From the sequence record LR756501.1: a DNA stretch of 64,000 nucleotides. One strand, written 5' to 3'. This document shows, piece by piece, positions 25,865 to 60,711 of the stretch. Made by a program: the position numbers and the translations under genes. The notes beneath the pieces are model-generated. The model was given only the letters and a program-made list of their open reading frames with translations, searched no databases and had not been told where the DNA came from. Position 1 is the first letter of the stretch. Each line of letters opens with the position of its first letter.

Positions 25865-26104
25865 TTATTTGTTCCAATTCTCTTCTCCGTAGGGGTCCAA
25901 GTCACTAAAAATTCTTTCACCTTCTTCATTTTTCACCATACTCTCATACTTGAAATCTAGATAGAATATTTTACCTATTGGTAATCTTTCCATTCTACTA
26001 TCTCTATTAAATGGTATAGTAGCCTTGTAAGGGTTTCTATTTCCCATCATATTAGGATTATATCTTGGTAGATTTGTTTCCTTTAAATTTAATTTTTTCA
26101 TCAT
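25865..26104 (-). CDS. Small protein with C-terminal DPYGEENW tag
   Basis: Ends SDLDPYGEENWNK. Confidence 0.7.
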   Translation of the reverse strand: MMKKLNLKETNLPRYNPNMMGNRNPYKATIPFNRDSRMERLPIGKIFYLDFKYESMVKNEEGERIFSDLDPYGEENWNK

Positions 26105-26307
26105 GCTGAACCATATTTATAAGAAGCCCAACAATCGTATTCTTCTGTCCAAAAGAAACCCAATTCATCTAATTCTTTTTTATCTTCATCTGAAATTTGA
26201 TCCTCAGTATAACCACATATCAACATAACATCGTGTTCGCAATGTGTGGGATAACTTTCATTTCCGTATTTCAGGAATATCTGTAAAGCTTTAATTAAAT
26301 CTTCCAT
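26101..26307 (-). CDS. Conserved-looking small phage protein
   Basis: MEDLIKALQIFLKYGN..PTHCEHDVM..LDELGF pattern. Confidence 0.7.
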   Translation of the reverse strand: MEDLIKALQIFLKYGNESYPTHCEHDVMLICGYTEDQISDEDKKELDELGFFWTEEYDCWASYKYGSA

Positions 26308-26317
26308 TTTTATTATA

Positions 26318-27658
26318 TTAATCGTGAATACATCTAATTGATAACGCGTCCCTATTATCAGTCATACCTCTCCAAATCCAAGTACTTATATGTTCAAAAC
26401 TTAAAGTATAACCTGTCCAATTTTGTGAATTGAAATAACGTTTAGAAGTGTAAAAATTGGCATTTAAATTAATATTGCAGTAATAAGATCCACCATCTTT
26501 AACCCACATTCCACCAGGTAAAGCCGTAAATCCACTTGAATTAGTAGCCCCAGTGTTTGGGTCGGTCCAATGATTAAAACTAGTTTCTTTCATATATCCA
26601 CCAGCAATGGTATCAATACTAAGCCAAGGATTAATGACTTGCCAAGATCCACCAAAAGATACAACTAATTCATTCCATTCAGCATCTGTTGGAATATGCC
26701 AATCATCTGGGCAAATTCCCTGTGCCCCTTCTGTGGTATCATAAGCCATTGCTTCATCCCAACTATAAAGTCCACCGTAAATGTTACAATTATCTTGATC
26801 ATTACCGTAACAAAATTTCTCTACAATAGTATCTTGATGAAATCCTTGTCCACTGGTTCTAAATGTTCCGACATTCAGATTTTCAGCCATCCATATCTGC
26901 ATAGTAGTGTCCATAGGGGATTTTTTACTATTTACAGCAATCTGCACTGTGGCGTAATTATGTCCATTAATATCTAGACATTTAAGAAAATTGAAAGTGA
27001 GAGTCTTACTCTTGTTTGGTCTATCCATAATGAAATTGGTATAGGTACCTGTTGTTCCCTTGTACTGTAAGAGTTCACCATTTTCGTAAGTCATTTCAAC
27101 CGTTGTCTGACTATTTTTCAATTTACTACCACCTGTCTGTGGTTCAAAGGAAGTGTAACTAATATTTATATCATTTTCAAAAAAACTATTACTTAATAGT
27201 TTAGTGGAATAATTGAAATTCTTACCACTAACTCTTACAAGGTACATTCCTTGTTTAACACCATTAATTGTAAATGTATGCAATCCGTATTGTAAGAATT
27301 TATCTGTGGTATAAAGAGATTTCCCACACATATCTATAATTGAAATGTTGGTATTTCCAGAACCTATAAATTTTAGAGTGGATTTATCAGTCATTGGATT
27401 TGGATAAATCTGCATATCTGACTGTTTTTCAGGATTTTGAATTCCAACGCCCCATCCAATAAGGTGAAGAACCTCACCCCCGTTTAGATAGACTGTATCT
27501 GGATCTGAAATATTAACAACTTGAATTGTACCAACAACGTTGGTATCACCAGAAGCGCCAAAACTAATAAGATAATCTGGTAGATTAAATTGGGCGTAAG
27601 ACGCGATGGCAAGAGCCAAGAAAACAATTACTGATGTAAATCTTTTCATATTTTTCAT
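26318..27658 (-). CDS. Secreted protein with T9SS type-A sorting domain and FISUMP domain
   Basis: Signal peptide; IYPNP..IIDMCGK..GMYLVRV; QIWMAENLN, YGGLYSWDEA, QGICPDDWHIPTDAEW, TNSSGFTALPGG. Confidence 0.85.
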   Translation of the reverse strand: MKNMKRFTSVIVFLALAIASYAQFNLPDYLISFGASGDTNVVGTIQVVNISDPDTVYLNGGEVLHLIGWGVGIQNPEKQSDMQIYPNPMTDKSTLKFIGSGNTNISIIDMCGKSLYTTDKFLQYGLHTFTINGVKQGMYLVRVSGKNFNYSTKLLSNSFFENDINISYTSFEPQTGGSKLKNSQTTVEMTYENGELLQYKGTTGTYTNFIMDRPNKSKTLTFNFLKCLDINGHNYATVQIAVNSKKSPMDTTMQIWMAENLNVGTFRTSGQGFHQDTIVEKFCYGNDQDNCNIYGGLYSWDEAMAYDTTEGAQGICPDDWHIPTDAEWNELVVSFGGSWQVINPWLSIDTIAGGYMKETSFNHWTDPNTGATNSSGFTALPGGMWVKDGGSYYCNINLNANFYTSKRYFNSQNWTGYTLSFEHISTWIWRGMTDNRDALSIRCIHD

Positions 27659-27711
27659 ATTTAGATTGTAAAATTACAACTTAATTACGAAATAAAAAAA
27701 TAAATTTAAAA

Positions 27712-28590
27712 TTATTTATGATTATTAGGTTCAACGTGAACATTCACTATCGCAGTTGGTTGAATTTTATTAATTTCTTTTTCTAAATCTTCTGAAATAC
27801 CGTGTGCTTCAGTTAAAGAATACTTATCATCAACGTGTACACAAACATCTACGTAATACTGGTGTCCAGATTGTCTTACTTTAAAACTATGATAAGATAA
27901 AATACTGGTAAATCTTTTTATAACTGTTTCTATATCATCTACACAATCAGGTGCTCTATCAAGAAGTGCGTCTACCGCTCTTTTACCAAGTTTCCAACAA
28001 ACGTGAATAACAATCAGAGCTACAAACAAAGCAGCAATAGAGTCAGCGTAATTAAAGAGTTTAATTCCCGTCATTTGTCCGATAGTCACAGAAATAAGAC
28101 CAAGTAAAACAACCGCTGAACTCCATATATCTGTTGAAAAATGTAAAGCGTCCGCTTCAAGTGCTTGACTATTATACTTTTTAGCTGCTCTCATAAGTTT
28201 CCTACTTCTCCAAACATCAATCACAATAGATGTAATAACTACAATATAACTAAATATAGTAACTTTAATATCAATGTTACCTGTTATAAGTCTATGTATT
28301 GCTTCGTAACAAATCCAAAAACAAGTCACAAACAGAAGTAGTGTTTCAATAAGTGCTGAGAAGTTTTCTATTTTACCGTGTCCGTAATGGTGATCTTTAT
28401 CAGCGTCTTTAGTTGATACTCTTACAGCGAACAAAGTGATAATGGCAGCAACTAAATCTAAACCAGAGTGTAGTGCTTCAGATAAAATACCCAAACTATT
28501 GGTCATAGTACCAATAGTGAGTTTAAATCCTGTTAAAAAGATAGCAGCAAAAACAGATATTAATGCTACTTGATTTTTTTCTTTGTTCAT
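27712..28590 (-). CDS. Cation diffusion facilitator (FieF-like) metal efflux transporter
   Basis: SEALHSGLD, HHYGHGKIE, ALEADALHFSTD, DALLD, C-terminal VHVEP. Confidence 0.93.
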   Translation of the reverse strand: MNKEKNQVALISVFAAIFLTGFKLTIGTMTNSLGILSEALHSGLDLVAAIITLFAVRVSTKDADKDHHYGHGKIENFSALIETLLLFVTCFWICYEAIHRLITGNIDIKVTIFSYIVVITSIVIDVWRSRKLMRAAKKYNSQALEADALHFSTDIWSSAVVLLGLISVTIGQMTGIKLFNYADSIAALFVALIVIHVCWKLGKRAVDALLDRAPDCVDDIETVIKRFTSILSYHSFKVRQSGHQYYVDVCVHVDDKYSLTEAHGISEDLEKEINKIQPTAIVNVHVEPNNHK

Positions 28591-28592
28591 TT

Positions 28593-28805
28593 TTATAAAG
28601 AATAATAACTATCACTGGGAAGACAAATCCAACATATCGCGTAAAGAAGAATTCCTATACCGTAACAAAAAACTGATAGACCCCAAAAGATTCTTAAAAT
28701 AACTGGATCTATACCGAAATAATCACCTATACCTGAGCACACGCCAGCAAGTATAGAATGGTCGTACCTTCTTATAACTCTGTTTTCTATTCTTTCGTTT
28801 TTCAT
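28593..28805 (-). CDS. pspC: PspC domain protein
   Basis: RRYDHSILAGVCSGIGDYFGIDPVILRI..LLYAICWICLP. Confidence 0.9.
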   Translation of the reverse strand: MKNERIENRVIRRYDHSILAGVCSGIGDYFGIDPVILRIFWGLSVFCYGIGILLYAICWICLPSDSYYSL

Positions 28806-29008
28806 TCTAACTCGGGTGCTGGTGAATATAATATACTATCGTAACAACCAGTTCTATCACTAGTTATCTCTTCGTAACAAATTCTTTTTTGTTCCTTACA
28901 TTTAGTTATAGCAAACTCAATCATAAGATCAACAATCTCTTTCTTGTAACCAGTGATAATACTATGGCTACCTTTAAATTTACTATCAAATAATTCGTTT
29001 GCGGTCAT
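28802..29008 (-). CDS. Hypothetical protein
   Basis: 68 aa, translationally coupled. Confidence 0.65.
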   Translation of the reverse strand: MTANELFDSKFKGSHSIITGYKKEIVDLMIEFAITKCKEQKRICYEEITSDRTGCYDSILYSPAPELE

Positions 29009-29011
29009 ATC

Positions 29012-35044: not shown

Positions 35045-36325
35045 TTAACCTGAATAAACTAAATAAAAACCATTATTACTTTTCTCTAACTCTATCAACC
35101 CTAATAAATCAAATATATCTCTCTGCACCTTTAACCCGTTTCCAGATTTGTAACCAGTTGGATAACACTTATCTACAAGACTTTCAGCTTCGTAAAAATC
35201 TTCTAAATCATCAATCAATGTATTAACAGATTTATATTCTTGTTTTGGTTGCATATCAGGACCTTTGTTACATTCTAACATAAATGGGTTCAAGTCTTTA
35301 TCAACTACGAAATCCATTCCGAACACTTGTGCACAAAGATTGTTGTTTAAATTGCCTTTTCTACCAAGACTTGGTTTAACAGCGTCTATCACCATAGCCA
35401 CCTTGTTGTTTATTCTTTCAAAGAGCACGTCAGGATTATCATATCCGTTATCTAATAGATATGTTCTTAACTGTCTCATAGTCATTGGATTTTCATCGTA
35501 GACTTTAAGATCCAAATTGAAACTAGTAATGTTGTTTTCGAAATCAAGAGTTGAGTCGTCGTATTCTTTATTGGAGTAGATACATGTGGCGTATTTATTA
35601 ATGTGTGCTTCTACTACTCCATTTTTTATGGTGAGGAGAAGGTACATTCTTATATTAAGTTTTCTTTTATTTATAAGGAGAAGGTCTCTCTTGTAATTTT
35701 GAACAAGAGTGTAATTTTCTTTAGATTCAAGAATATCTTTGAGTTCTCTTGTGAGTTTTAATCCTTCTTTCCTTTGTCTTCTTGATTTGAGAATATAAAT
35801 TTCATTTTGTTTATATTGTTCTTTAAACAATTGAACGTGGTCGTCATTTGATAGGACAAATGTTTCTGGTAAAAGTTGGCTAGCACCTACTCTACCGTAA
35901 GCTTTTTCAAGAATGTTCCAAAGACAGGTTTTACCAACTAAGTCGTCACATCCCTGCACACCAAATATGATTTGATTTTCGTTATGAGGTGTTAATTTTT
36001 CTAAATCAATTTCAATTCTATTATAACCATTTGGTATATAGATGTTCCAATCATCGTCAAAATCTAGTTGATAGAATTTATATTTTCTAAGGATTTTAAT
36101 GAAACCAGATACACTGGAAGAATGACTATCACAATAGAATGATTTATATTTGCGAGTATCTTCTCTAACGAGATCTGAGAACTTTGGTAAGTTCATATAT
36201 TTGTGATAAATATCAGAAATCATATCTGTGATTTCGTGATTTCTATCAAGGAGGAAATCAAAAGTTTCAGGTTTTTTTTGAAACTTACTTATAATTTTTT
36301 CTAATAAAGACACAGTATCAGACAT
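35045..36325 (-). CDS. Tubulin-tyrosine ligase (TTL/TTLL) family ATP-grasp amino-acid ligase
   Basis: LLPETFVL, YILKSRRQRKEGLKLT, LVQNYKRDLLLINKRKLNIRMYLL, VFGMDFVVDKDLNPFMLECNKGPDM. Confidence 0.85.
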   Translation of the reverse strand: MSDTVSLLEKIISKFQKKPETFDFLLDRNHEITDMISDIYHKYMNLPKFSDLVREDTRKYKSFYCDSHSSSVSGFIKILRKYKFYQLDFDDDWNIYIPNGYNRIEIDLEKLTPHNENQIIFGVQGCDDLVGKTCLWNILEKAYGRVGASQLLPETFVLSNDDHVQLFKEQYKQNEIYILKSRRQRKEGLKLTRELKDILESKENYTLVQNYKRDLLLINKRKLNIRMYLLLTIKNGVVEAHINKYATCIYSNKEYDDSTLDFENNITSFNLDLKVYDENPMTMRQLRTYLLDNGYDNPDVLFERINNKVAMVIDAVKPSLGRKGNLNNNLCAQVFGMDFVVDKDLNPFMLECNKGPDMQPKQEYKSVNTLIDDLEDFYEAESLVDKCYPTGYKSGNGLKVQRDIFDLLGLIELEKSNNGFYLVYSG

Positions 36326-37386: not shown

Positions 37387-39003
<1,617 letters not shown>

Positions 39004-41351: not shown

Positions 41352-41744
41352 TTATAGGTTTATCAATGTGCCTAAGTTCCAATTCTCAGTATTTGTTCTT
41401 TTATAATACTCGTTCTTCCATAATTCAAAATCCCATCTTTCGTCAACTAAAAACCTTATCTTCTTACCGTTAGCGTCAGCGTATTCTATTTCACTTTTAG
41501 TTGACGCTCCGATATAACCACCTGGGTTTATAACGAAGATTTCGTTACATAGATCAATTTTACCTTTATGTAATTGATCCAGCATAGTTTTTTCTTCTAC
41601 TGTTAATTTCTCACCGTCTGCCTGTCCAAACAAACCAACTGAAATAACAATATTTCCTTGAAGTGTTAACCATTTAGTAACATCAAGGAAATCTTCTTTA
41701 AACTTAGTGCTTCCGCACAAAGTTATAACATTAAATTTATCCAT
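41352..41744 (-). CDS. Nucleoside deoxyribosyltransferase-like/DUF4406-like protein
   Basis: VITLCGSTKF..HKGKIDLCNEIFVINPGGYIGASTKSEIEYA. Confidence 0.6.
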   Translation of the reverse strand: MDKFNVITLCGSTKFKEDFLDVTKWLTLQGNIVISVGLFGQADGEKLTVEEKTMLDQLHKGKIDLCNEIFVINPGGYIGASTKSEIEYADANGKKIRFLVDERWDFELWKNEYYKRTNTENWNLGTLINL

Positions 41745-42036
41745 TCAATCTCTCTTTATATTTTTGTAGTTCGTCAATTAAAGTATCAATTTCGTTTGTT
41801 GTAACGTTATCATATTCCTCTAATTGGAATCTACCTGGATAGATAAGTTCTACCCTACTTTGCCCTTGTCTAATAGGAAGCCATACGTGTTCGATGTAAT
41901 AATTTTCTTTAACGTCTTCTGGTAAATTTAAAGGTGCGTATTCTTGCATCAATTGATACAATGATTGTTCTGCCTGTTGGCGTGTTAATCCATCTACATT
42001 AACGTAAAACGCCATTACTATAAGTTTTCTTTTCAT
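41737..42036 (-). CDS. Hypothetical protein
   Basis: 99 aa ORF. Confidence 0.65.
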   Translation of the reverse strand: MKRKLIVMAFYVNVDGLTRQQAEQSLYQLMQEYAPLNLPEDVKENYYIEHVWLPIRQGQSRVELIYPGRFQLEEYDNVTTNEIDTLIDELQKYKERLNG

Positions 42037-42453: not shown

Positions 42454-43179
42454 ATGATAAAAGATTATTTCACATATATAAAAGAATCTATTGAAGAAGA
42501 AAAATTTAAAATAGGTGATAAAGTTATCATTAATGGTATAGTTGACGATACTGGGTTTGATAATCAACCAGATACAATAGACGATATATCAGAAGATAGA
42601 GTTGATACCAATATGGACAAAAATGGTCAATGTGATATGTACCCATATAAAGGTATAACTTATCATATGGCTGAAGCACAATGGTGGGTATCTCCATATA
42701 ATTTGAAGAAAGGTAATTATAAAAGAGTATTCAGTAAAGAAGATCCTTACGGTGAAGAAAACTGGGATAAAGAAACCAACGAGGCCAAGAAAGTTAAAGG
42801 AGAAGAGATATTGATGCCTTTAATGGGGAACGAATTTCAATTAGGTGTTAATCATTCAATAAGAGATATCATGGGTGGAAGAATGAATGAAATTGGAAGA
42901 AACGTTGTTATCGATCTTTTAGGTAAAACAAAAGGTAAAAAGGTGTGGTTTGTTAATACGAAGTTAGGTAAAAATCTTAAAAAAGAAAGAATATCAGAGG
43001 GGTTTTACTGGATGGAAGATAGAGAGAACGGTTGGCTAGGTTGGTCACTTATGATGATAGGCACTAAAAAAGATTATTTTGTTAATGTAACTAGACAAAT
43101 TGGATATTATACAGAAGGGGAAAAATATAAAAGAACAATATCACCACTTGATCCTTACGGTGAAGAAGTATGGGATTAA
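42454..43179 (+). CDS. Two-module protein, each module ending in DPYGEExW
   Basis: Start moved to MIKDYFTYIKES after TAATATATA; tags at 42742 and 43150. Confidence 0.75.
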   Translation: MIKDYFTYIKESIEEEKFKIGDKVIINGIVDDTGFDNQPDTIDDISEDRVDTNMDKNGQCDMYPYKGITYHMAEAQWWVSPYNLKKGNYKRVFSKEDPYGEENWDKETNEAKKVKGEEILMPLMGNEFQLGVNHSIRDIMGGRMNEIGRNVVIDLLGKTKGKKVWFVNTKLGKNLKKERISEGFYWMEDRENGWLGWSLMMIGTKKDYFVNVTRQIGYYTEGEKYKRTISPLDPYGEEVWD

Positions 43180-43196
43180 AAAAGAAAAATAAAGAT

Positions 43197-43571
43197 ATGG
43201 TAAAAAATTATTTACAATTCATAAACGAAGCAGATGCACCTCCACCAGCACCAGCTCCACAAGCACCACCAGCTCAGCCTCCTGCACAACCAGCTCCAGC
43301 TGCACAACCACCAGCTCAACCAGCTCAAAGTGGTTCAACTCAAAATGAACTATCTGCACAAGAACCAGCACCACAAGGACAATCAACAGAAGAAAAATCT
43401 GGTGATTTATCTAACTATAACAACGAAGGTGCAACTAAATTTCCTGATACTGTTAAGAAAATGGTGGACTTAATAAAAGACTTGGATAAGGAACAACTTA
43501 TTAAATTAAGAACTCTCATAGCAGAGTTGAAAAGTATCAACGACGCCAAAGCTGAAATCGGAAAACTATGA
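43197..43571 (+). CDS. Pro/Ala/Gln-rich protein with N-terminal KNYLQFINE tag
   Basis: Start moved to MVKNYLQFINEA. Confidence 0.7.
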   Translation: MVKNYLQFINEADAPPPAPAPQAPPAQPPAQPAPAAQPPAQPAQSGSTQNELSAQEPAPQGQSTEEKSGDLSNYNNEGATKFPDTVKKMVDLIKDLDKEQLIKLRTLIAELKSINDAKAEIGKL

Positions 43572-43945
43572 TAAAAATGTTCGAACAATTCAAAGAAAGT
43601 CTAGAAGATCCTTATGGAGAAGAAATAGAAGGTGAACTACCAGTACAAGATAACGATAAAGATATTCCAGATGATGAAATGGTAGATATTGATGATCTCT
43701 ACGACGTTATGGGCGACTTGATGTGGAAAGCCAATGTGCTCTATTGTAAATTTAGTGGTGAAAATCCAGATGAAGTTGATAACGCTCCTTCACCCGAAGA
43801 CGCTATGGAATCAATGGATGAAATACCCGAAGATAGTGAATATTACGAAGAGGCTACAAACATTTCAAATGAAATAGGTACACTCCAAGAACAAATTGAC
43901 GAAAAAGAAGCAGAAGAAGCTTTTGAAGACGATGACGAAGATTAA
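43568..43945 (+). CDS. Very acidic protein with KMFEQF and DPYGEE tags
   Basis: MIKMFEQFKESLEDPYGEE; D/E-rich throughout. Confidence 0.7.
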   Translation: MIKMFEQFKESLEDPYGEEIEGELPVQDNDKDIPDDEMVDIDDLYDVMGDLMWKANVLYCKFSGENPDEVDNAPSPEDAMESMDEIPEDSEYYEEATNISNEIGTLQEQIDEKEAEEAFEDDDED

Positions 43946-49077: not shown

Positions 49078-49424
49078 GCCCACTAGCACATTTTCCGGGA
49101 GGACCAAGATATTGGGGTGATGCCCAGATATACTTAAATCCAATAGTTTTATGTTTCGATAATAAAGAATGCGATAAATTATTGAAAATTGAAATACCAA
49201 ATCCAATAGATAAAAAAACTTCATCAATTAAAGCGTCTTTTAAAGAAGATGACGAAATGAGAAATACTCTTTTAAAAGAAAATCCAAAGGATTTAAGAAT
49301 AGAATTCTATGATAGAGAAGGTAAAACTATAAGAATCATTTACATGCGAGAATGTAAATGTGTTGAAATGCCTAATAACGAGGTTGAAATTCAATTAGAA
49401 TCTTGGGAAGATAAATATTTTTAA
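49074..49424 (+). CDS. Short degenerate tail-tube-like paralog
   Basis: MSPLAHF..IYLN..IEFYDREGKTIRIIYMREC parallels the upstream gene. Confidence 0.55.
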   Translation: MSPLAHFPGGPRYWGDAQIYLNPIVLCFDNKECDKLLKIEIPNPIDKKTSSIKASFKEDDEMRNTLLKENPKDLRIEFYDREGKTIRIIYMRECKCVEMPNNEVEIQLESWEDKYF

Positions 49425-49702
49425 TCTAAAGTTAAATCTCTAACGTCATCTTCGACTTGATCGTAAAAATCTGGATATTCGTCTTCTATAATAGATAGAA
49501 TTTCGTCTGCTTTATCCATTCTATAATCTAAGTCGTCACTTCCAAGTAATTTATCTAATTTCTTGTCTATACTCTTGTTTTTCAGAAGTTTAAAGAATCT
49601 GATTATATTACCGTCGTATTCTATTTCACCTGACCATTTTTCTTCACCGTAAGGGTCTAGTTCGCTTTTATCTGCGTTTTCGTTAAATTTCTTTATTTTC
49701 AT
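49421..49702 (-). CDS. Small acidic protein with KKFNE and DPYGEEKW tags
   Basis: MKIKKFNENADKSELDPYGEEKW. Confidence 0.7.
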   Translation of the reverse strand: MKIKKFNENADKSELDPYGEEKWSGEIEYDGNIIRFFKLLKNKSIDKKLDKLLGSDDLDYRMDKADEILSIIEDEYPDFYDQVEDDVRDLTLD

Positions 49703-50171: not shown

Positions 50172-50762
50172 TTATTTATAACTTCCTCCACCTACCCATA
50201 GTACTAAACTTCTTCTACACCCTTTAGTTATTGGAGTAACTCTATGTAACAAGAAACTTGGAAAAAATATTCCACAACCTTTTATTTTTGGTAAAGTCTT
50301 AAAATCACCACCTGTCCATATATCAAAATTACCTCCTTCGTATTCAGATGAATCAGATAATTGAATAGTAACACTTATCTTTCTATGATTTATAGGATAG
50401 GGTCCAATATCCATATGCCAATCGTAATGTCCACCACCCTCATAATATTCAGTATATTGAATAGAATCTACAATAGAATGTAAATTATAACCGTAACTCT
50501 TATTAGCCTCAATGAACAGATCTTTTAATCTTTCATATACCCAATAAGATTTATCGTCGTAATGAATCCATTTAATCTTAGATTTCCTAATAGGTTCAAC
50601 CTCTTCAACTGGCGATCCAACAGTTGTGGCTGTTTGAAATGGGTATAATTCTTTTAAATTATTAATCCACATCAACTGCTCTTCGTTAAATACTTCATTG
50701 ATAGCCACAAAACTTGTTTGGTCTATAGCGTTATCAAATTCAAATACAGGTCTAAAATCCAT
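50172..50762 (-). CDS. 2OG-Fe(II) oxygenase (prolyl-4-hydroxylase-like)
   Basis: RKSKIKW, HYDWHMD (HxD), RKISVTIQLS, EYEGG, FPSFLLHRVTP..RRSLVLWVGG. Confidence 0.92.
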   Translation of the reverse strand: MDFRPVFEFDNAIDQTSFVAINEVFNEEQLMWINNLKELYPFQTATTVGSPVEEVEPIRKSKIKWIHYDDKSYWVYERLKDLFIEANKSYGYNLHSIVDSIQYTEYYEGGGHYDWHMDIGPYPINHRKISVTIQLSDSSEYEGGNFDIWTGGDFKTLPKIKGCGIFFPSFLLHRVTPITKGCRRSLVLWVGGGSYK

Positions 50763-53700
50763 TATTTAATCTTACTTTTTAATTCTTGTAACTCACTTAA
50801 CCAAATAGATTCCTCACTGGTCTGTTCCAACTTCTTTAACTTCTCTCTCAATTTATCGTATTCTTCCTTCAACTCCTGCAACCTATCTTTTGTGAAAGAC
50901 ATAATAGACATATTCAAAAGATAACCATATGATTCTTCTACTCTTTCAAGTTTATGTTTTTCTAAATCCTGCTCAACCAGATCTCTACTTCGCTTGTTAA
51001 TTATGACTTCACCGTCTATAACCAACTTTAAAAATTTCATTCTATTTTGATGTATTCTTATATCCTTTTTTAACTCCTCTAGTTGATAATTTTTTCTCTT
51101 CGTGTAATATTCTAATCTCACTTTATAGAAATCATCTATTATATTATATTGATCAGTATATTTTTTAATTTTACATTCTTCATCAAAAAGATGCATGTTC
51201 TTTGTAGATAAATAAGTCTCCAAACTCAACTTCTTATAAACATTACCGTCACCAAGTAATTCTTCCATTTGTTCTTTAGTAAGTATAATCTTTATATCTA
51301 TAACCTGATCAGTACAATTCTTTACATAATCCTTTATTATCTTATCTTCAATTAACTTATCTAACTTCTTAAAATACTCATCGTTCCACATTCCAATAGG
51401 AAGCTCAGTCACTCTAATCACATTAGCATTTGGCTTATCATATATACCTCTTGTTATATATCTTCCACCTTCTTCGTCTCTTATTATCTCACCCTTAAAT
51501 CCTTTATAATATGGTAAAACTTCTTTTGTTTTCTTACCCTGTATTTTATTAGCTAAATATGAAATTATCTCTAAAGGATTATACATAGGTACATTACTAG
51601 AATATCCAGTTCCTAAACCAAAAGCACCATTCACTAAAACCATTGGTATAATAGGAACGTAATATTTTGGCTCAATTGGAGCACCGTCGTCATCTAAATA
51701 ATCAAGTACATCATTATCTTCTTTCCTAAAAATATAACCACTTATATCACTTAACTTTGTGAAAATATATCTTGGTGAAGCACTATCTTGTCCACCCTTT
51801 ATTCTTGATCCAAATTGTCCCTTTGGTGATAATAAATTTATATTGTTTGTACCTACAAAAGTCTGTGCCATTCCAACAATGGCTTCTTCGAGTGAAGTGT
51901 TGCCGTGATGATAAGCAGCAGACTCAATTACCGCACCAGAAAGTGAACTAACTTTTATTTCATTCCTAATGTTCTTCTTAACAAGAGTATAGAAGGCCTT
52001 TCTCTGACTTGGTTTAAATCCATCTATTGAGTTCTGTATTTGTCTTACATTACTATACATTGAATACTCAATATACTCATTATTAATGAACTTATCATAA
52101 GTCTGTTTCACACTAAACTTATCAATAAAATCCACAGGAGCATAAGTCTTTAACCATTCTTTTCTATCGTCTGCTCTCTTATCATTAAACAACATATCAA
52201 GAAGATCCTTAGTCTCAGGCTTATCGTAATGAAACCTAATAAGATGCTTACTTATCTTCTTGAAAAACTCTTTCATTTCATCTGGTTGTATAGTGCCCAA
52301 ACCTTTGTAATACTTTATAAACCAGTCTTTTGTATTAGTTTCAGATTTCCATTTCTTGTAATCACCCAGTCTGTAAAAGTACTTATATACTTTACCTTTT
52401 TCAATTCTAACAATAGGTGTAATGAATTCGTAAATGAAATCAAGGTGAAGAAGTTCAGGCCAGAACGTATCAAAAATATTCATAAGTAATCCTTTGATAT
52501 GTTTACCATCAGCGTCTTCGTCAGACATAAGAACAACTTTACCGTATCTAAGTTTCTTAGTATCAGTATATTTTTTACCAAATTCAAGACCTAGGATATT
52601 AATGATATTTTTAAGTTCGTCATTTTTACCTATGTCTGCCATTGAGGCTCTTCTAACATTTAGTCCAGATCCTTTTAATGGAAATATACCAAAATAATCA
52701 GAATCAACTTCTGAAAGACCAGCAACACAGGATGAAGCTGCAGAGTCACCTTCTGTTAAGAATAATAAACATTTTTCACTTTCGTTAGTGCCAGCTTTAG
52801 CTGCGTCGTCGAGTTTACCTATTTTAACTTTTGATTTGGCTATATCTTTCTTAGCGTCAAAATCTTCTTTAATCATCAGAAAACGAATTAGTTCGTCAAT
52901 CATTGCTGATCCAGCGATCTTTTTAATTAGATTATCAGATACTTCTGGAGCAGTTACTTTACTTATTAAGTTCTCTTTAGATTGTGTGTCGAATAATGGA
53001 TTAACAACTTTACAATTAACAAATATAAATAAGTGATTTTTAATATCATTTTGTTTTATATTAAGTTTCTTATTCTTCTTTAATAGGGTTTCAGCAACTT
53101 TTTTTGTAATTTGATTACTCACAGAGTTAACGTGGGTACCACCGTTATAAGTAGATATACCATTAACCATAGATACTTGGTTGAATGAATTATCAAGGGA
53201 TCTTGATACACCAATTTCCCATTTATCGTCAAGTTTTTCGTAGAATGATTCTTGTTCACCAACGAACATTTCCATATAGGATTTGAAATTCTTTGTGGGT
53301 ATATGTATGTTATTGTAATACACTTTAACTTTACTACAATACACGGAAACGTCTATACAACGTTTTACGATGATTGATTCGATCTCTTCATCTATACCAT
53401 CTAATTCAAAACGTGCAAAATCAGGATAAAAGGTTATTTTAGTATATTGTTTCTTTGACGCCTTTATTTTAGGTTTGCCAATTTTATTCATATTGTTTTC
53501 GAACTCTTGATGATAATGTTTCTTACCGTCACAAGTTTCTAATATGAATTTTTTAGAAAAGATATTTGTTAATTTGGCACCAAGTCCGTTTTTTCCACCC
53601 CACACTCTATCTATTGTATCGTCAAAATTTTCTCCTGCAAGAAGATGTCCAAAGATAAGTTCGGGTATATAACATTTTTCTTTTGAGTGCATCTCAACAG

Positions 53701-54010
53701 GAATACCTGTGCCGTCGTTCTCAATTGATATTGAATCCTTTGTAACATTAACTTTAATATATTTAACGTCACCACTACGTATAGAGTGGTCGGACGCGTT
53801 AGTAAGAATTTCGTCAAAAAGTTTTAGAAAGCCTGGATTGAAGTTGATAGGTTTATTAACTATTTTAATATTGTTTAAGTCCTTTGGATCTTCAACAACG
53901 AAGATATTTCTAGTTTCTGTAATGGTTGATCCGACGTATGTATCTGGCCTTAGAAGGACGTGTTCTTTATGAGTTAATTTTTGATATTTTTCCGAATTAG
54001 TTTTAACCAT
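50762..54010 (-). CDS. Type IIA DNA topoisomerase, single-chain (B and A subunits fused)
   Basis: HVLLRPDTYVGS, FDEILTNA, GGKNGLGAKL, LTEGDSA, DEDADGKHI, YYKGLGT, DGFKPSQRK, AYHHG, catalytic SPRY. Confidence 0.95.
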   Translation of the reverse strand: MVKTNSEKYQKLTHKEHVLLRPDTYVGSTITETRNIFVVEDPKDLNNIKIVNKPINFNPGFLKLFDEILTNASDHSIRSGDVKYIKVNVTKDSISIENDGTGIPVEMHSKEKCYIPELIFGHLLAGENFDDTIDRVWGGKNGLGAKLTNIFSKKFILETCDGKKHYHQEFENNMNKIGKPKIKASKKQYTKITFYPDFARFELDGIDEEIESIIVKRCIDVSVYCSKVKVYYNNIHIPTKNFKSYMEMFVGEQESFYEKLDDKWEIGVSRSLDNSFNQVSMVNGISTYNGGTHVNSVSNQITKKVAETLLKKNKKLNIKQNDIKNHLFIFVNCKVVNPLFDTQSKENLISKVTAPEVSDNLIKKIAGSAMIDELIRFLMIKEDFDAKKDIAKSKVKIGKLDDAAKAGTNESEKCLLFLTEGDSAASSCVAGLSEVDSDYFGIFPLKGSGLNVRRASMADIGKNDELKNIINILGLEFGKKYTDTKKLRYGKVVLMSDEDADGKHIKGLLMNIFDTFWPELLHLDFIYEFITPIVRIEKGKVYKYFYRLGDYKKWKSETNTKDWFIKYYKGLGTIQPDEMKEFFKKISKHLIRFHYDKPETKDLLDMLFNDKRADDRKEWLKTYAPVDFIDKFSVKQTYDKFINNEYIEYSMYSNVRQIQNSIDGFKPSQRKAFYTLVKKNIRNEIKVSSLSGAVIESAAYHHGNTSLEEAIVGMAQTFVGTNNINLLSPKGQFGSRIKGGQDSASPRYIFTKLSDISGYIFRKEDNDVLDYLDDDGAPIEPKYYVPIIPMVLVNGAFGLGTGYSSNVPMYNPLEIISYLANKIQGKKTKEVLPYYKGFKGEIIRDEEGGRYITRGIYDKPNANVIRVTELPIGMWNDEYFKKLDKLIEDKIIKDYVKNCTDQVIDIKIILTKEQMEELLGDGNVYKKLSLETYLSTKNMHLFDEECKIKKYTDQYNIIDDFYKVRLEYYTKRKNYQLEELKKDIRIHQNRMKFLKLVIDGEVIINKRSRDLVEQDLEKHKLERVEESYGYLLNMSIMSFTKDRLQELKEEYDKLREKLKKLEQTSEESIWLSELQELKSKIK

Positions 54011-54088: not shown

Positions 54089-54604
54089 ATGATAAAAGAT
54101 TATAAATTATTTAGAGTGTTCGAAGAACTGACCGAACCTTGGGACGAAGAACCACCTCTTCAATATAATCAATATTTCACTAATAACTGGGTTGGTTTTA
54201 AACAGGAGTTATTAGATGATTTGAAACTCAAGTTGATAGGTAAAACAATTTGTATAGACGCAACAAGACAATATGATTGGAGAGTAAAACAAGAACCTGA
54301 TCCTATTGATAATATAGTTATTAACGGTACACATGTAAAACCTATTTATAAAATAACAGTTAAGGATATTCAGTACGATGGTAGTCACAGGCAGGAAGTT
54401 TATTACGTTGATATTATAGATGACGAAGGTAAAAGATATAAATTAAAGAAGATAGTTACAGATAAAACATATGCTAATTTTGCCAAGAAGGCTGGTAAAG
54501 AACTAGAAAGAATGGCGGAAGAAAAGAGAAAGAAGGAAAGATTGAAGTTGAAGCATTTATATCACGATCCTTACGCCGAAGAACTTTGGGATGAGGACGA
54601 TTAA
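54089..54604 (+). CDS. Hypothetical protein with KDYKLF..FEE and C-terminal DPYAEELW tags
   Basis: Follows TAATATATA. Confidence 0.75.
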   Translation: MIKDYKLFRVFEELTEPWDEEPPLQYNQYFTNNWVGFKQELLDDLKLKLIGKTICIDATRQYDWRVKQEPDPIDNIVINGTHVKPIYKITVKDIQYDGSHRQEVYYVDIIDDEGKRYKLKKIVTDKTYANFAKKAGKELERMAEEKRKKERLKLKHLYHDPYAEELWDEDD

Positions 54605-54619: not shown

Positions 54620-55057
54620 ATGATATACAATTTCGAAGAATTTTCATTGAACGAAAAATATTACGACGATCTTACACCATATACATACGATGCTATAAGG
54701 TGGGCTAAAAATCCTGTTAATATTGGTTGGCTAGATAAAGGACAAGATTATACAAAAGGTGAAGTGCCTGCTGGATTTCTAAACAAATTGGGTAGTGCAG
54801 ACACTTGTGGTAGGCATAAGGGAAGTCATAATTGTCCTTTCTGTGGGGGATCTGATAGTAGTAACGTGTTGTATGTTCAAGGTAAAGGTGTAACTTATGT
54901 ATTTCCTGAAATGTTATCTCATTATATAAGAAAACACGGATATAAACCACCACAAGAATTTATTGACGCAGTAATGGCTTTACCCGATAAGGAAAAAGAA
55001 AGATATAAGGGTGGATTTCATCATGGATTCGGTAGTAATTCGCCATGGGGGTGGTAA
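54620..55057 (+). CDS. Cys/His-motif domain protein (NIGWL..HxCPFC..FPE..HYI..HxYKPPQEFIDAV)
   Basis: The same domain recurs in the next gene. Confidence 0.75.
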   Translation: MIYNFEEFSLNEKYYDDLTPYTYDAIRWAKNPVNIGWLDKGQDYTKGEVPAGFLNKLGSADTCGRHKGSHNCPFCGGSDSSNVLYVQGKGVTYVFPEMLSHYIRKHGYKPPQEFIDAVMALPDKEKERYKGGFHHGFGSNSPWGW

Positions 55058-55070: not shown

Positions 55071-55910
55071 GTGAAGAATTATAAACAATTCGTAAACGAA
55101 TATTACACATGGGATGATGATGTTACTGAAAAAACAATAGATCTTGGTGTTCTCTATGAACAACAAGAGGGAAACTCTGATCACATATTGCAAATTTTAC
55201 AATATGAATTTAGACCAATACAATCAAATGATGAATATAAAGTTATCAATTTAGTCGGTAAGTATAGTAAAGTTAATTTAACATTGGATAATCGTGCGCA
55301 ATATCCCGGAGGTATAGAAATGGATGAAAAAGGACTCCTATTCTCATCAAGATTAAGAGACAGATTAACATTCAGACGTTTAACATTTGATCTTTTTCCC
55401 AGATTTCTTTTTAAAATTAAAATATTAAAAAGAAGATTTATCCCTGAAGATCCATATGGAGAAGAAGAATGGGATATAAATGAATCCTATTATCCAGATT
55501 TATCACCATATAATTATAGTTGGGAGATGCCTGAGTGTGTTAATATTGGTTGGCTAGATGATAAACACGATTTTGAAAAAGGCGAAGTTCCTGAAGGTTT
55601 TGTAGATAAGTTGGTAAAAATGCCAAGGTTTGTACAACATTGTGGTTATCACAATTGTCCATTCTGTGAAGGCGGAAGAGATACATGGAGCAGTAGTATT
55701 AAATTGGCTATAGGAGACGGTGTAGTTTACCTTTTCCCAGAATTGACGAAGCACTATATATCTAAACATCATTATAAACCACCACAAGAATTTATTGACG
55801 CTGTATTAAAAATGGAAAATATGTCTGATGGTGATGCCCATAGATACATGAATAATATCATGTTAAGACATAAGGAACATTTTGATAAAATGTTCCATAG
55901 AAAGAGATAG
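55071..55910 (+). CDS. Two-module protein: unknown domain plus DPYGEEEW, then a copy of the 54620 domain
   Basis: Tag at 55449; exact 21-nt and 29-nt matches to the upstream gene; ends in TAG. Confidence 0.75.
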   Translation: MKNYKQFVNEYYTWDDDVTEKTIDLGVLYEQQEGNSDHILQILQYEFRPIQSNDEYKVINLVGKYSKVNLTLDNRAQYPGGIEMDEKGLLFSSRLRDRLTFRRLTFDLFPRFLFKIKILKRRFIPEDPYGEEEWDINESYYPDLSPYNYSWEMPECVNIGWLDDKHDFEKGEVPEGFVDKLVKMPRFVQHCGYHNCPFCEGGRDTWSSSIKLAIGDGVVYLFPELTKHYISKHHYKPPQEFIDAVLKMENMSDGDAHRYMNNIMLRHKEHFDKMFHRKR

Positions 55911-57910: not shown

Positions 57911-57943
57911 GAAAAAACTAACATCTATACATTAATATATAAG

Positions 57944-57979
57944 AAATGATAGCATATAATAATGTGCTATCATTTTTTT
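57944..57979 (+). terminator. Rho-independent terminator after the S1 gene
   Basis: AAATGATAGCA/TGCTATCATTT stem plus T-run. Confidence 0.7.
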
Positions 57980-58022
57980 ATATGAAATAAAATTCATAAT
58001 TTAGCAAAAATAAATTAATTCA

Positions 58023-58505
58023 ATGAAAGACTTTAAACTTTTTGGTGGGCAAGAATTGAAGGACCTTGGTGAATATCTACGGGAATATTACGCATTATAT
58101 CCTGATATACAGATATTTATTGGGACGGACTCTGCTCAACACGGTAAAGTCACAAAATACGCTACTGCTATTTCTTTGTTACATCCAGGTAAAGGTGTGC
58201 ATGTTATTTTCAATAGACATAATATCAAGAGGGAACGTGATATGTTTACACGTCTATGGAACGAAGTAGAATATACACGTGAAGTAGCTGATTACGTTCA
58301 CGATATAATGGTTGATATTTATCCACATAAGGAAGATACTAAAATTCCAGTACTTCACTTGGACTTTAATAAACAACCACGTCATAAGTCAAACGTAGTT
58401 CACGACTTATCAGTTGGATATTTGAAAGGATTTGGTTACGAAGTTCATACAAAACCAGATTCATGGTGTGCTACGTTCTGCGCAGACATGTTAGTTAAAA
58501 ACTAG
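58023..58505 (+). CDS. RNase H-like YkuK/DUF458 family protein
   Basis: IFIGTDS, GKGVHV, RLWNEVE, LHLDFN..HKSN..GY..GFG...TKPDSWCATFCAD; ends in TAG. Confidence 0.85.
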   Translation: MKDFKLFGGQELKDLGEYLREYYALYPDIQIFIGTDSAQHGKVTKYATAISLLHPGKGVHVIFNRHNIKRERDMFTRLWNEVEYTREVADYVHDIMVDIYPHKEDTKIPVLHLDFNKQPRHKSNVVHDLSVGYLKGFGYEVHTKPDSWCATFCADMLVKN

Positions 58506-58523
58506 ATTTCCTTGACCTTGGCT

Positions 58524-58553
58524 AAAAAGGGGGCTTAACGCCCTCTTTTTTTT
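58524..58553 (+). terminator. Rho-independent terminator
   Basis: AGGGGGC-TTAAC-GCCCTCT followed by a T-run. Confidence 0.75.
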
Positions 58554-58579
58554 GTTCAAAAATATTTATATATAGTGGC

Positions 58580-59278
58580 ATGAAAAAGTACAATGAATAT
58601 CTTTTAGAGGAAAAATTTAATCAAACCAATACTGATCTAATTTTAGAAAAATCCGCTTTCGCTGCTTATAAAGACGTTCAACACCTTGTGTTAAAACAAT
58701 ATGGATCACAACTTTATTTTATAGCAACATTCAATTCAGCTATTGTATCTTTATATCCTATTGTTAAACATGTAATATACAATTCAAATCTTGATATAAA
58801 CATATCAACTTATCAAATAGCTTTATTAACTATATTTGCTATTGCTGAAATCTTACACGTTAACAACGACGCTGTTAAAGATATTAAAAGAAAATTGATA
58901 GAAGATCATTTTCTTATTCACGTTCAGGCTGTTAAGAAAACATTATTCTCAGTAGAGAAAATAGTTAGAGTAGTAGCAAAAACAGTTGGTAAGACTATAT
59001 CTTTATTTATTGATATGTTAGCGTATGTAACTATTCTTGTACCTATTAATGATGCACTTATAGAAATAATAAATAAGGACGGATTAGATATGAATACTTT
59101 GCCACATAAGGTATTAGGATTAGGTATAGGATTAGGTATTTTGACTTTTAAAAATATAATTGTTAGGATATTAGATAAAATAGGATTACATACATCTATA
59201 TCTAAGGTTGATGATGTTATAGAAGATGAAAAGAAGAATGTCTATCACAAAATGAGAACCAAAGAAAAAATGAAGTGA
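58580..59278 (+). CDS. Hypothetical membrane-associated protein with KKYNEY..EE tag
   Basis: Several hydrophobic helices; TTATATATA upstream. Confidence 0.7.
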   Translation: MKKYNEYLLEEKFNQTNTDLILEKSAFAAYKDVQHLVLKQYGSQLYFIATFNSAIVSLYPIVKHVIYNSNLDINISTYQIALLTIFAIAEILHVNNDAVKDIKRKLIEDHFLIHVQAVKKTLFSVEKIVRVVAKTVGKTISLFIDMLAYVTILVPINDALIEIINKDGLDMNTLPHKVLGLGIGLGILTFKNIIVRILDKIGLHTSISKVDDVIEDEKKNVYHKMRTKEKMK

Positions 59279-59281
59279 TAG

Positions 59282-60127
59282 ATGAAAGTTAAGAAACTAC
59301 AAGAATATAACACTAAAAGAATAATGGTCTTTAGTGGCTCAGCTAGATGTATGGACAATTGTCCTGGTCAAGATGGTAAGACTAATTATATTGTAGAACA
59401 AGCAATTAAAGACTTACCAAAAGACATAGAAATTGATCTGGTTGATCTTTCAGTTGAAACTGATAAACCTATTATTCAACCTTGTAAGGGCTGTATATCA
59501 ACCGCTGGTGGTGCTCACTGCCATTTTCCATGTGATTGTTACTTTAAAAAGAATAAAGATTATCCAGATTTAATGCACGATTTTGATATTTACAAAAGAC
59601 TTTTAAAAGCTGACGCTTTCATAGTATTTACTCCTATTAATTGGTGGAGTGTACCTACACAAGTTAAAGCAATGTTTGATAGATTAGTATGTGGTTCTCT
59701 TACCATTACAGATAAACAAGCACAAGAACTTTGGCCCGATGACGTTAAGAATCCTAAAAAGACAAAACCATTTTCAGACACAGAAAAATACAAAGAGATG
59801 GTAAAGAATCATTATGAAGGAAAGGTTGGAGCATTTTATGTTCACGGAGATGACGGAGCGGATGATTACAAGAACAGAGAAATGCCAGACTCTTATAAGA
59901 AATATGAAATAGGTAAATTTGACGAACCTATAAATACTATTAAACCTATTATCTGGCAATGTAGATATATGGGAATAGATGTACCTGATGAATTGGTTGA
60001 GGCTTTTTATATGAATGAAGATATAAGTTATAGTGACGCTAATGATAAGTTAAAGGAAGGTAAGTTGAATTTTGCTGTGAAGAAGGCTAGGAAATTAATT
60101 TTAGATACTTTTGATTATATAAAATAA
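59282..60127 (+). CDS. Flavodoxin-like NADPH-dependent FMN reductase / Fe-S flavoprotein
   Basis: FSGSAR, IQPCKGC..CHFPCDC, ADAFIVFTPINWWSVPTQVKAMFDRL. Confidence 0.85.
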   Translation: MKVKKLQEYNTKRIMVFSGSARCMDNCPGQDGKTNYIVEQAIKDLPKDIEIDLVDLSVETDKPIIQPCKGCISTAGGAHCHFPCDCYFKKNKDYPDLMHDFDIYKRLLKADAFIVFTPINWWSVPTQVKAMFDRLVCGSLTITDKQAQELWPDDVKNPKKTKPFSDTEKYKEMVKNHYEGKVGAFYVHGDDGADDYKNREMPDSYKKYEIGKFDEPINTIKPIIWQCRYMGIDVPDELVEAFYMNEDISYSDANDKLKEGKLNFAVKKARKLILDTFDYIK

Positions 60128-60138
60128 TATATAGTGAT

Positions 60139-60711
60139 ATGTTAACGAAATTTGAATTATTTTTGGAAGGTAAATGGTTTGGAGGCGGTAGAGCAGCAAA
60201 GGCTGGCCCTAATGCTCCAGTTGTTGTTCCTAATCAAGAGCAAGCAAAGAAAAAAGTTTACGATAAACCAGATGATGATATAATAGAATGGATGATTAAC
60301 TATCTTAAAAAGACTGGTGTTGATGAGACAAAATTAACTGATGATTATAATTTATCTCCAAAAACTTTTGAACCTAAACAATGGTGGGAATATAAATTTA
60401 TAAAACAAGGAAAGACTAATCCATTGGATCCTTACGGTGAAGAAGATTGGCCAGGAGCTACTGGTAATAAACAGATTAATATAAGAATAGAAAAGAGATC
60501 TCTACTTGGTGACAAATATGAATATTATTATAGGTTCAAAGTTAATGATAATGATTTAGATGTATCTGAAAAATATATTAAAAGAATAGTAGAATTACTT
60601 GACGCCCCAAAAGAAGCAAGAAGGTTGGCGAGAGAAAAAAGGGAGGCTGAAGCTAAGAAATCCAAGAATGACGCAATAAGAAGAGATTTATTTGAAAAAA
60701 GATCGAAATAA
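60139..60711 (+). CDS. Hypothetical protein with TKFELFLE and internal DPYGEEDW tags
   Basis: Follows TAATATATA; tag at 60427. Confidence 0.75.
   Translation: MLTKFELFLEGKWFGGGRAAKAGPNAPVVVPNQEQAKKKVYDKPDDDIIEWMINYLKKTGVDETKLTDDYNLSPKTFEPKQWWEYKFIKQGKTNPLDPYGEEDWPGATGNKQINIRIEKRSLLGDKYEYYYRFKVNDNDLDVSEKYIKRIVELLDAPKEARRLAREKREAEAKKSKNDAIRRDLFEKRSK

Follow-up and report, generated by a model that had tools for sequence, protein, structure and literature searches.

A short acidic peptide tag on about 92 otherwise unrelated proteins of a huge uncultured phage, tentatively a docking signal

Why should proteins that resemble each other in nothing else carry the same short peptide? The question is raised by a stretch of 64,000 nucleotides (the window, taken at its full length) of sequence record LR756501.1. 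This record is identical to LR756503.1 and represents a 735,411-bp uncultured phage; the window starts at record position 627,061. A genome of 735 kb is reported as the largest in 'Clades of huge phages', where genomes above 634 kb are put in the Mahaphage clade (PMC7162821). The original prediction had described a peptide, DPY(G/A)EExW (the tag), in seven small and otherwise unrelated proteins between 25.9 and 60.5 kb of the window, and had proposed a portable short linear motif that could serve, for instance, as a capsid or scaffold docking signal paired with prohead-protease cleavage after Glu. The tag turns out to be a protein-level feature of about 9% of the proteome; the docking function is our tentative reading of it.

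The entire LR756501.1 record was scanned for DPY[GAS]EE. The record carries no annotation, and open reading frames (ORFs) were taken from a crude call (1014 ORFs, 92% coding). The scan yielded 110 copies in ~92 of the ~1014 ORFs (~9% of proteins). DPYGEE, present in 91 of 1014 ORFs, is by far the commonest hexapeptide, the next unrelated one occurring in 11 ORFs. Enrichment over composition, on which the case for a shared motif was expected to hinge, is large: 106 DPYGEE were counted in the called proteins and 0.009 were expected. Within the window, the back-translated pattern GAYCCNTAYGGNGARGARNNNTGG (DPYGEExW) has 6 matches compared with 0.00 expected from 100 dinucleotide shuffles. Among the genome copies D, P, Y, E and E are invariant, G is found in 109 of 110 and W at position +7 in 104 of 110. 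Pooling the genome with its relatives in IMG/VR gave 351 distinct tag contexts, with G (344), S (6) or A (1) after the Y and with W in 334. The tag core is D-P-Y-G-E-E-x-W-[DE]-[DE], ten residues in which positions +8 and +9 are mainly D or E, and it is often preceded by [KR]-[RVI]-[VI]-[FY]-[ST]-x-x (favoured residues are R at -6, V/I at -5, F/I/V/Y at -4, S/T/N at -3, E/D/P at -2 and L/E at -1); an illustrative 20-mer is KEIKRVFSELDPYGEENWDE. Forty-two of the 110 tags are C-terminal (the protein ends 0-5 residues after W), 21 stand behind an N-terminal leader and 47 are internal. The commonest C-terminal form in a first scan of the relatives was W plus two residues and then a stop.

The tag is under selection at the protein level, because synonymous codons vary among the copies (GAT/GAC, CCT/CCA/CCC/CCG, TAC/TAT, GGT/GGA/GGG/GGC and GAA/GAG) while the residues stay fixed. 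Of 107 near-matches to the consensus DNA, 100 encode the tag and the remaining 7 are degenerate tags (DSYGEE, DPYCEE, DDYGEE, etc.). Two codons are skewed relative to the genome, CCT (67% vs 34%) and TAC (75% vs 36%), which suggests a trace of spread by copying and not independent origin.

All eight copies reported for the window were recovered, each at its position and on its strand. They lie in seven ORFs, ORF 42454-43179 holding two of them. That count stands for the window, but with ~92 tagged proteins genome-wide, multidomain enzymes included, the tag is neither a feature of small proteins nor confined to the interval from 25.9 to 60.5 kb. The tags of the window, their carriers and two neighbouring genes are as follows (ORFs are named by their first window coordinate).

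25874-25897 (-): first tag copy, DPYGEENW followed by NK and a stop, at the C-terminus of the 79-aa ORF 25865-26104 (-).
42454-43179 (+): 241-aa two-module protein with leader MIKDYFTYIKE and two tags.
42742-42765 (+): internal tag of the 42454 ORF, KRVFSKEDPYGEENWDKETNE.
43150-43173 (+): C-terminal tag of the 42454 ORF, KRTISPLDPYGEEVWD followed by a stop.
43170-43571 (+): gene after a C-terminal tag; the ORF overlaps the tag tail, and translation from the probable start yields the leader MVKNYLQFINE.
43568-43945 (+): 125-aa acidic protein, the leader of which, MIKMFEQFKESLE, runs straight into the tag.
43607-43630 (+): tag of the 43568 ORF, DPYGEEIE, without W.
49421-49702 (-): 93-aa protein with a leader-like N-terminus, MKIKKFNEN, and then the tag.
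49634-49657 (-): tag of the 49421-49702 ORF, ELDPYGEEKW.
54089-54604 (+): 171-aa protein with leader MIKDYKLFRVFEE and a C-terminal tag.
54566-54589 (+): variant tag of the 54089 ORF, DPYAEELW, followed by DEDD and a stop and preceded by a basic stretch (..ERLKLKH).
54620-55057 (+): stand-alone DUF7919 paralog (PF25535, E 2.5e-29) without tag; its leader, MIYNFEEFSLNE, abuts the domain start KYYDDLTPY.
55071-55910 (+): 279-aa fusion of leader (V/M)KNYKQFVNE, module 1, tag, D-INE junction and DUF7919.
55449-55472 (+): tag of the 55071 ORF, RRFIPEDPYGEEEW; the D-INE junction is at 55473-55484.
60139-60711 (+): 190-aa protein with a leader-like N-terminus, MLTKFELFLE.
60427-60450 (+): internal tag of the 60139 ORF, TNPLDPYGEEDWPG.

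With the tag masked, BLAST at E < 1e-3 linked 76 of the 92 carriers to none of the other proteins of the genome. For the window carriers, the only similarities were between the 55071 and 54620 ORFs and between the 42454 ORF and one distant gene, and at this level they are indeed otherwise unrelated. Pfam and PHROGs recognised DUF7919 alone in the window carriers and identified few carriers genome-wide. These are a 1178-aa protein in which a deaminase is fused to a CCA-adding enzyme with an HD domain and four tags lie between the domains, together with a GNAT, a methyltransferase, a phosphoribosyltransferase (PRTase), nucleotidyltransferases, zinc ribbons and DUF7919. In the annotated carriers 14 of 14 tags lie outside the Pfam/PHROG domain envelopes. 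An AlphaFold2 model of the 55071 ORF has DUF7919 at a predicted local distance difference test score (pLDDT) of 75-97, whereas residues 119-148, which comprise the tag and the INE junction, are coil (pLDDT 29-41) between folded modules; the pLDDT of the leader is 27. A Foldseek search of this model against the PDB gave no match at E <= 0.001, and the model of the 42454-43179 protein (4 sequences, mean pLDDT 45) was uninformative. Orthologs of the 42454 ORF (46-54% identity) have both DPYGEE cores in place while the flanks have diverged, and relatives of the 55071 ORF (71% and 64% identity) retain the tag. The terminal and inter-domain sites, the coil and the retention in orthologs together point to a short linear motif in flexible segments: the tag sits in flexible ends and linkers of ~92 otherwise unrelated proteins, and its portability, as had been proposed, is supported far above chance. 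The modules after tags often start with ..[FY]-K-[IV]-G-D-K-V.. (the 42454 ORF has KFKIGDKVI at residues 17-25) and may represent a recurrent small, SH3-like beta-barrel.

A pattern scan of the relatives in IMG/VR gave at least 120 multi-copy loci, many with 2-7 copies, on contigs of up to 243 kb; one 682-aa ORF of the relative L023 contains six tags. In 596 Gb of bacterial and archaeal genomes 72 single matches were found, against ~69 that we estimate to be expected by chance. When 50,697 GenBank phage records were searched by tblastn with the tag consensus, this phage alone matched. The sister phage LR756504 (636 kb), of which 200 kb was sampled, showed in that sample neither the tag nor any other amplified hexapeptide, the commonest one occurring 3 times. 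Since the relatives have the tag and cellular genomes, other GenBank phages and the sampled part of LR756504 do not, it is an innovation of one sublineage, to which it is restricted. No description of the tag was found in the literature, where 'DPYGEE' matches were unrelated eukaryotic ones only, and the searched passages of the paper that is the source of the genome (PMC7162821) make no mention of it. The tag thus appears to be previously undescribed.

It had also been proposed that the tag closes module 1 of two-module proteins and is followed by Asn-Glu (NE) and module 2. The modular part of this claim is borne out: DUF7919 occupies residues 14-119 of the 54620 ORF and 140-246 of the 55071 ORF, and module 2 of the latter begins where the former does, right after NE (..EWDINE|SYYPDLSPY vs ..FSLNE|KYYDDLTPY). 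The succession of tag and NE is seen only where two genes have been fused and is not general, as NE belongs to the leader and follows a minority of tags. NE occurs within 16 residues past W in 13 of 65 genome tags (6.9% expected, p = 4e-4), and 4 of these 13 are at offset 0-1 and were read as the tag's own W-N-E tail. Over 211 tags from the genome and its relatives, hydrophobic-N-E was found within 28 residues of the tag in 11% compared with a background of 7%. A general rule of NE after the tag was therefore rejected on these counts, and so was a leader remnant as a general feature after internal tags (3.3% vs 4.7% background).

The leader itself, M-I-K-K-[FY]-x-x-[FY]-[IE]-[NK]-E, opens ~73 ORFs (~7% of ORFs), with window gene starts at 42454, 43197, 43568, 49702(-), 50142(-), 54089, 54620, 55071 and 60139. 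It is also present in the tag-less LR756504 (loci L217-L220) and is separate from, and older than, the tag. Its pattern, K-x-[FY]-x-x-F-I-x-E, is that of the N-termini of T4 IpII and IpIII (read from AF158101), and it is 3.8-fold enriched among tagged proteins (p = 3e-5). In an alignment of DUF7919, distant homologs (35-50% identity, including the sole NCBI-sourced cluster) start at M-Y-F-K-D-L-T or M-S-Y-Y-P-D-L-S, several closer homologs gain a leader ending in NE just ahead of the domain start, and the fusions retain ..INE| at the junction. In the fusion P0110 a complete internal leader comes after the tag (..DPYGEEVWIGEKLITKFKIFE|AYY..), and P0113 and P0114 have the INE junction and no tag. 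From this alignment, and from the occurrence of the leader in LR756504, NE is the end of the leader and comes to stand next to the tag where genes have been fused. Tag and leader are also linked at the DNA level. The tail of a C-terminal tag often overlaps the start of the next gene, in that AATGATTAA translates as N-D-stop and, one frame on, as M-I-K; examples are found at record positions 44452, 501253 and 574513 and at window positions 43170-43200, the 43170-43571 ORF exemplifying such a junction of tag-stop and start-leader. By our own reading, ~12 of 41 genes after a C-terminal tag start with the leader, compared with 7% of all ORFs.

The genome encodes head proteins of the T4 type. Searches by phmmer with T4 proteins identified an untagged portal (g71969, gp20-like), protease-scaffold protein (g73913, gp21-like) and major capsid protein (MCP; g76415, gp23-like) at 72-78 kb. 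The 807-aa product of g73913 (record 73913-76336, (+)) combines a prohead protease with long scaffold-like ..YIAE.LDKSI.. repeats and an acidic, Gln-rich stretch. It retains the residues aligned with His85 and Ser140 of T4 gp21, which we take to be the catalytic ones, and is predicted from its sequence to be an active gp21-family protease. The Glu of hydrophobic-N-E peaks at protein residues 10-14. The motif is densest genome-wide in g73913 (7 sites, p = 0.0016), is found in the MCP at QMNE|NVGY, close to the point of cleavage of T4 gp23 (LTE|AEIGGDHGY), and aligns with an ITE|S segment near the C-terminus of T4 gp21. The proposed prohead-protease cleavage after Glu, as for T4 gp21, thus keeps a credible putative site and a T4-type head to go with it, but the site does not belong to the tag. 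The T4 large terminase gp17 has matches in three separate ORFs (record 609226, E 6.5e-29; 623865, E 2.6e-15; 699854, E 1.8e-35), which suggests a split or duplicated terminase.

BLAST revealed 18 small ORFs, scattered over the genome, each of which shares 35-45% identity with a part of the MCP, portal, protease, scaffold repeat or sheath; these fragment paralogs are candidate assembly accessories, decoys or captured fragments. Their positions include the following.

Window 41737-42036 (-); record 145891, 276342, 497197, 542326, 552409, 730457; 15148, 48028, 142020; 11314, 240978; 385423, 553796: paralogs of head- or tail-protein fragments.

Seven of the 18 are tagged, a 6.8-fold enrichment (p = 5.6e-4). 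One of the tagged genes, g11314 (record 11314-11850, (-); locus L121), is a second copy of the gp21-family protease with a C-terminal tag. It matches the PHROG 'head maturation protease' with E 3e-19 and Peptidase_S77 weakly (E 1.9e-5, 24.7 bits at a Pfam cut-off of 27 bits), and has Tyr at the position of T4 gp21 His85 and Arg at that of Ser140. Two orthologs (84% and 52% identity; L045 and L037) keep both this Arg and the C-terminal tag. Three tag-less huge phages have one protease locus each and no second copy. We predict from these substitutions that g11314 is a clade-specific, catalytically dead protease paralog.

What does the tag do? Our tentative preference, held with somewhat less than even confidence, is that it acts as a docking peptide, specific to the clade, by which accessory proteins are recruited to the T4-type prohead core. 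The tag would be a docking or sorting signal read by one common receptor, most likely a component of the prohead core such as the protease-scaffold protein or the clade-specific inactive protease paralog, and the tagged proteins would be loaded into the giant capsid as cargo. The cargo would include tRNA- and nucleotide-modifying enzymes, the GNAT, the methyltransferase, many orphans and the head/tail fragment paralogs. Processing by the gp21-family protease would be supplied by the older leader, which resembles a capsid targeting sequence (CTS), and by the hydrophobic-N-E sites, and gene fusion would leave the tag beside a leader remnant, giving the tag-NE pattern of the original prediction. 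We favour the capsid because of the T4-type head genes and CTS-like leaders, the enrichment of head paralogs among the carriers and the tagged, clade-specific dead protease. As a pattern comparison, the [G/A/S]-E-E of the tag would also fit the S/A/G-x-E cleavage motif of giant-phage prohead proteases (PMC5694885).

Several points weigh against this assignment. The evidence that would place the tagged proteins in virions is circumstantial, and ~92 cargo species exceed the ~50 head proteins of SPN3US (PMC7411985). The tag is missing from the true MCP, portal, protease-scaffold protein and sheath, and one tagged paralog is a fragment of the tail sheath and not of a head part (it is conserved in a relative to which we return below). 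The tag looks redundant if the leader already targets the capsid; being younger than the leader, it adds something that the sister phages do without. The tagged genes are dispersed genome-wide and not clustered with the head module at 67-78 kb. Moreover, ATATATAG stands 12 nt before the ATG in 18% of tagged vs 7% of untagged genes (p = 3e-4) and is also enriched at leader genes (examples precede record positions 500330 and 501873), whereas ATATATA[CT] takes its place ahead of the portal, protease-scaffold and terminase-like genes; the ATATATA positions of all genes show a second peak at ~27-30 nt before the ATG. The two elements may mark two promoter or expression classes.

Part of this evidence would suit a partner other than the capsid, and a docking motif for such a hub (a host protein, a phage compartment or factory, a chaperonin or a protease), which gathers ~90 takeover and accessory proteins or times their turnover, is a possibility that we take seriously without thinking it probable. 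All evidence for a linear motif applies to it equally. The carriers include enzymes of cytoplasmic type (the CCA-adding enzyme-deaminase fusion, GNAT, methyltransferase, PRTase and nucleotidyltransferases); the tagged genes are arranged as arrays of small genes and, unlike head genes, are often preceded by a ATATATAG motif each; and a gene for a Cpn60-type chaperonin is present in the window (37387-39000, (-)). However, the hub is itself hypothetical and has no named candidate, the chance-level frequency of the motif in cellular genomes implies that it is not a copied host ligand, and the enrichment of head paralogs and of the CTS-like leader among the carriers is left unexplained. Rather doubtful is the wider notion of a phage-made intracellular addressing system, in which one label on ~9% of the proteome, spread at gene junctions, is read by a dedicated reader. 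Candidate readers would be the dead protease paralog (Ser140->Arg), as a non-cutting receptor for Glu peptides, and an enzyme that modifies the tag, similar to tubulin-tyrosine ligase (TTL). If true, this would be a sorting or post-translational code for which no counterpart has been described in viruses of bacteria.

A gene for an ATP-grasp ligase of the TTL family is found in the window at 35045-36325 (-) (PF03133, E 2.5e-22), and the tag could be its substrate, the Glu-rich ..YGEE.. tail being glutamylated or tyrosinated; we regard this as unlikely. TTL and TTLL enzymes act on the ..GEE(Y) tails of tubulin, and the family prefers acidic, Glu-rich tails. No homolog of the usual substrate, FtsZ or tubulin, was found in the phage, four tags lie within 10 kb of the gene, and contigs with a TTL at 66% and 54% identity carry tags; the second of these belongs to the relative in which the tagged sheath fragment is conserved. 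The gene occurs in this phage alone among the 50,697 GenBank phage records, which is the distribution of the tag, but this co-occurrence is weak because most genes of this phage may be unique in GenBank. The TTL has ~105 metagenomic homologs, some of them on contigs resembling giant viruses, and no close relative of the TTL locus was found in IMG/VR. Homologs at 50%, 43%, 41% and 33% identity on phage-like or giant-virus-like contigs are without a tag in 21 kb, which makes the TTL family wider than the tag. A ligase directed at Glu also leaves the invariant D, P, Y and W unexplained.

We give about as little credence to the tag itself being a cleavage site, ..Y-[G/A/S]-E-E|x-W.., at which a gp21-family protease splits multi-module precursors and trims leaders in the manner of a polyprotein. 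In the 351 copies the Y is followed by G (344), S (6) or A (1) and then by E-E, which agrees with the S/A/G-x-E motif of the phiKZ and SPN3US proteases (PMC5694885), and tags do lie between modules, six of them in the L023 ORF and four in the 1178-aa enzyme fusion. Yet 42 of 110 tags are C-terminal, where a cut would remove ~4 residues, the ten-residue invariant core far exceeds what known prohead-protease sites need, and the MCP and scaffold have hydrophobic-N-E sites, not tags.

Likewise improbable is that the tag has no common partner at all and is a by-product, perhaps serving as an acidic solubility tail, of a recombination joint (tag, stop/start overlap, leader) that shuffles gene pieces. 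The codon skew at CCT and TAC would agree with copying, the AATGATTAA tail does encode the end of one gene and the start of the next, leaders are frequent in the genes after C-terminal tags, the same gene pair occurs both fused and split, and some tagged ORFs are arbitrary pieces of structural genes. Substitutions would, however, be tolerated in a simple joint or an unspecific acidic tail. Across the 351 copies seven residues hardly ever change, whereas flanks and synonymous sites do, and tags are retained in orthologs at 46-54% identity. A joint accounts for the spread of the tag and not for its maintenance, and as such is compatible with docking to the prohead core. Finally, a DNA- or RNA-level element (promoter, terminator, recombination or nuclease site) with incidental translation was rejected on reading frame and codon evidence and has next to no probability: against some codon bias at two positions, the consensus-DNA near-matches all read as tags or degenerate tags, all synonymous variants occur while non-synonymous change is almost absent, and copies lie on both strands and inside long ORFs.

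Other genes of the window were noted in passing. Host-like envelope and transport genes encode a protein with a sorting domain of the type IX secretion system (T9SS; Por_Secre_tail) and a Fib_succ_major domain (26318-27658, (-)), an OmpA-domain protein (22122-23708, (-)), a cation-efflux transporter (27712-28590, (-)) and an ABC ATPase (20014-21171, (-)). The Por_Secre_tail domain fits a Bacteroidota host; the source paper predicts Bacteroidetes as hosts of its genomes above 634 kb (PMC7162821). A single-chain type II topoisomerase of 1082 aa with GyrB-like and GyrA-like parts lies at 50762-54010 (-), and a ribonucleotide-reductase ORF at 86-1840 (+) matches just part of the barrel domain and may be split. 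Recurrent short words of the genome other than the tag are MDRIY (10 ORFs; also in LR756504, loci L217-L220), WYKKGKL (8) and collagen-like SGTSGT runs (11).

Hundreds of orphan genes in huge phages lack any handle for study. One peptide on ~92 proteins (351 distinct copies with the relatives) puts such orphans in a single functional class and offers one experimental handle on them. If the partner is the prohead core, the carriers would outnumber every known set of capsid cargo or ejected proteins, and the tag would be a very short packaging signal for a shell of the HK97 fold; if a different hub or a modifying enzyme recognises the tag, a code for sorting or modification that is peculiar to the phage would come to light. 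The junctions of tag-stop and start-leader, like the tagged pieces of MCP, portal, protease and sheath, hint at how such genomes grow, namely by shuffling of gene pieces.

Among known systems, the T4 CTS is the conserved signal by which diverse internal proteins enter the scaffolding core (PMC3012670) and a propeptide of 10-20 residues that is removed by gp21 (PMC5694885). Like the CTS of IpI, IpII and IpIII, the tag is a short portable peptide on diverse proteins; the CTS directs its carriers into the prohead core and is coupled to cleavage after Glu, and the phage has homologs of gp20, gp21 and gp23. It is the leader of the phage, not the tag, that has the IpII/IpIII pattern. The tag shows no similarity to M-K-x-[YF]-x-E-F-..-E or to an ending in hydrophobic-x-E. 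The CTS stands at the extreme N-terminus, a position that the leader fits and the tag, with 42 C-terminal, 47 internal and 21 copies behind a leader, does not. The tag is also ~ten times more numerous and is absent from T4 and from the sampled sister phage. Encapsulin cargo-loading peptides are short conserved peptides on a flexible end of the cargo that dock unrelated proteins inside a shell of the HK97 fold. The tag is likewise short, conserved and located on flexible segments of unrelated proteins, termini included. The consensus differs, and whereas encapsulin cargo genes are few and lie beside the shell gene, the ~92 tag carriers are dispersed over 735 kb, with the MCP gene at 76 kb.

The giant myoviruses phiKZ, 201phi2-1 and SPN3US possess proteases of the gp21 family, process many of their head and ejection proteins, and have families of paralogs as well as a protease paralog that has diverged (PMC5694885, PMC7411985, PMC10052503). 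The [G/A/S]-E-E of the tag would match their S/A/G-x-E pattern (small P3, Glu P1), but their propeptides exceed 100 aa and are not a shared ten-residue motif, and no common tag has been reported there. The best PDB match to the tag profile, and the sole sequence resemblance that the analysis turned up, was the linker of archaeal Nop10, ..RFSPEDPYGE.., nine consecutive residues of which equal the tag consensus including its flank (E = 0.13, not significant). This segment of Nop10 binds Cbf5 as an extended peptide; it is without the second E and the W at +7. The likeness is probably due to chance, as a zinc ribbon (CxxC..CxxC) was found upstream in 1 of 351 contexts and no TruB/Cbf5 homolog in the phage.

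In the T9SS C-terminal domain, LPXTG and PEP-CTERM systems one machine reads a C-terminal signal on many unrelated proteins, and the tag shares this one-label logic. These bacterial sorting signals need a transmembrane helix or a domain of ~80 aa and a free C-terminus, whereas the tag is followed by no hydrophobic stretch, ends 0-5 residues past W when C-terminal, and in about two-thirds of its copies is not C-terminal. With eukaryotic W-acidic and acidic-tail motifs the tag has an aromatic-plus-acidic resemblance and no more. Arbiol et al. are said to have described, in 2010, mobile regulatory cassettes of T4-type phages (PeSL), repeated elements that flank novel genes of small size within hyperplastic regions and have a presumed role in driving modular shuffling; PeSL are non-coding promoter/stem-loop DNA, whereas the tag is coding and conserved at the amino-acid level. 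Overall, the logic of the tag resembles that of the T4 CTS, the encapsulin peptides and the giant-phage propeptides, while its sequence, positions and scale differ, and the tag appears to be a previously undescribed member of the portable sorting/docking-peptide type.

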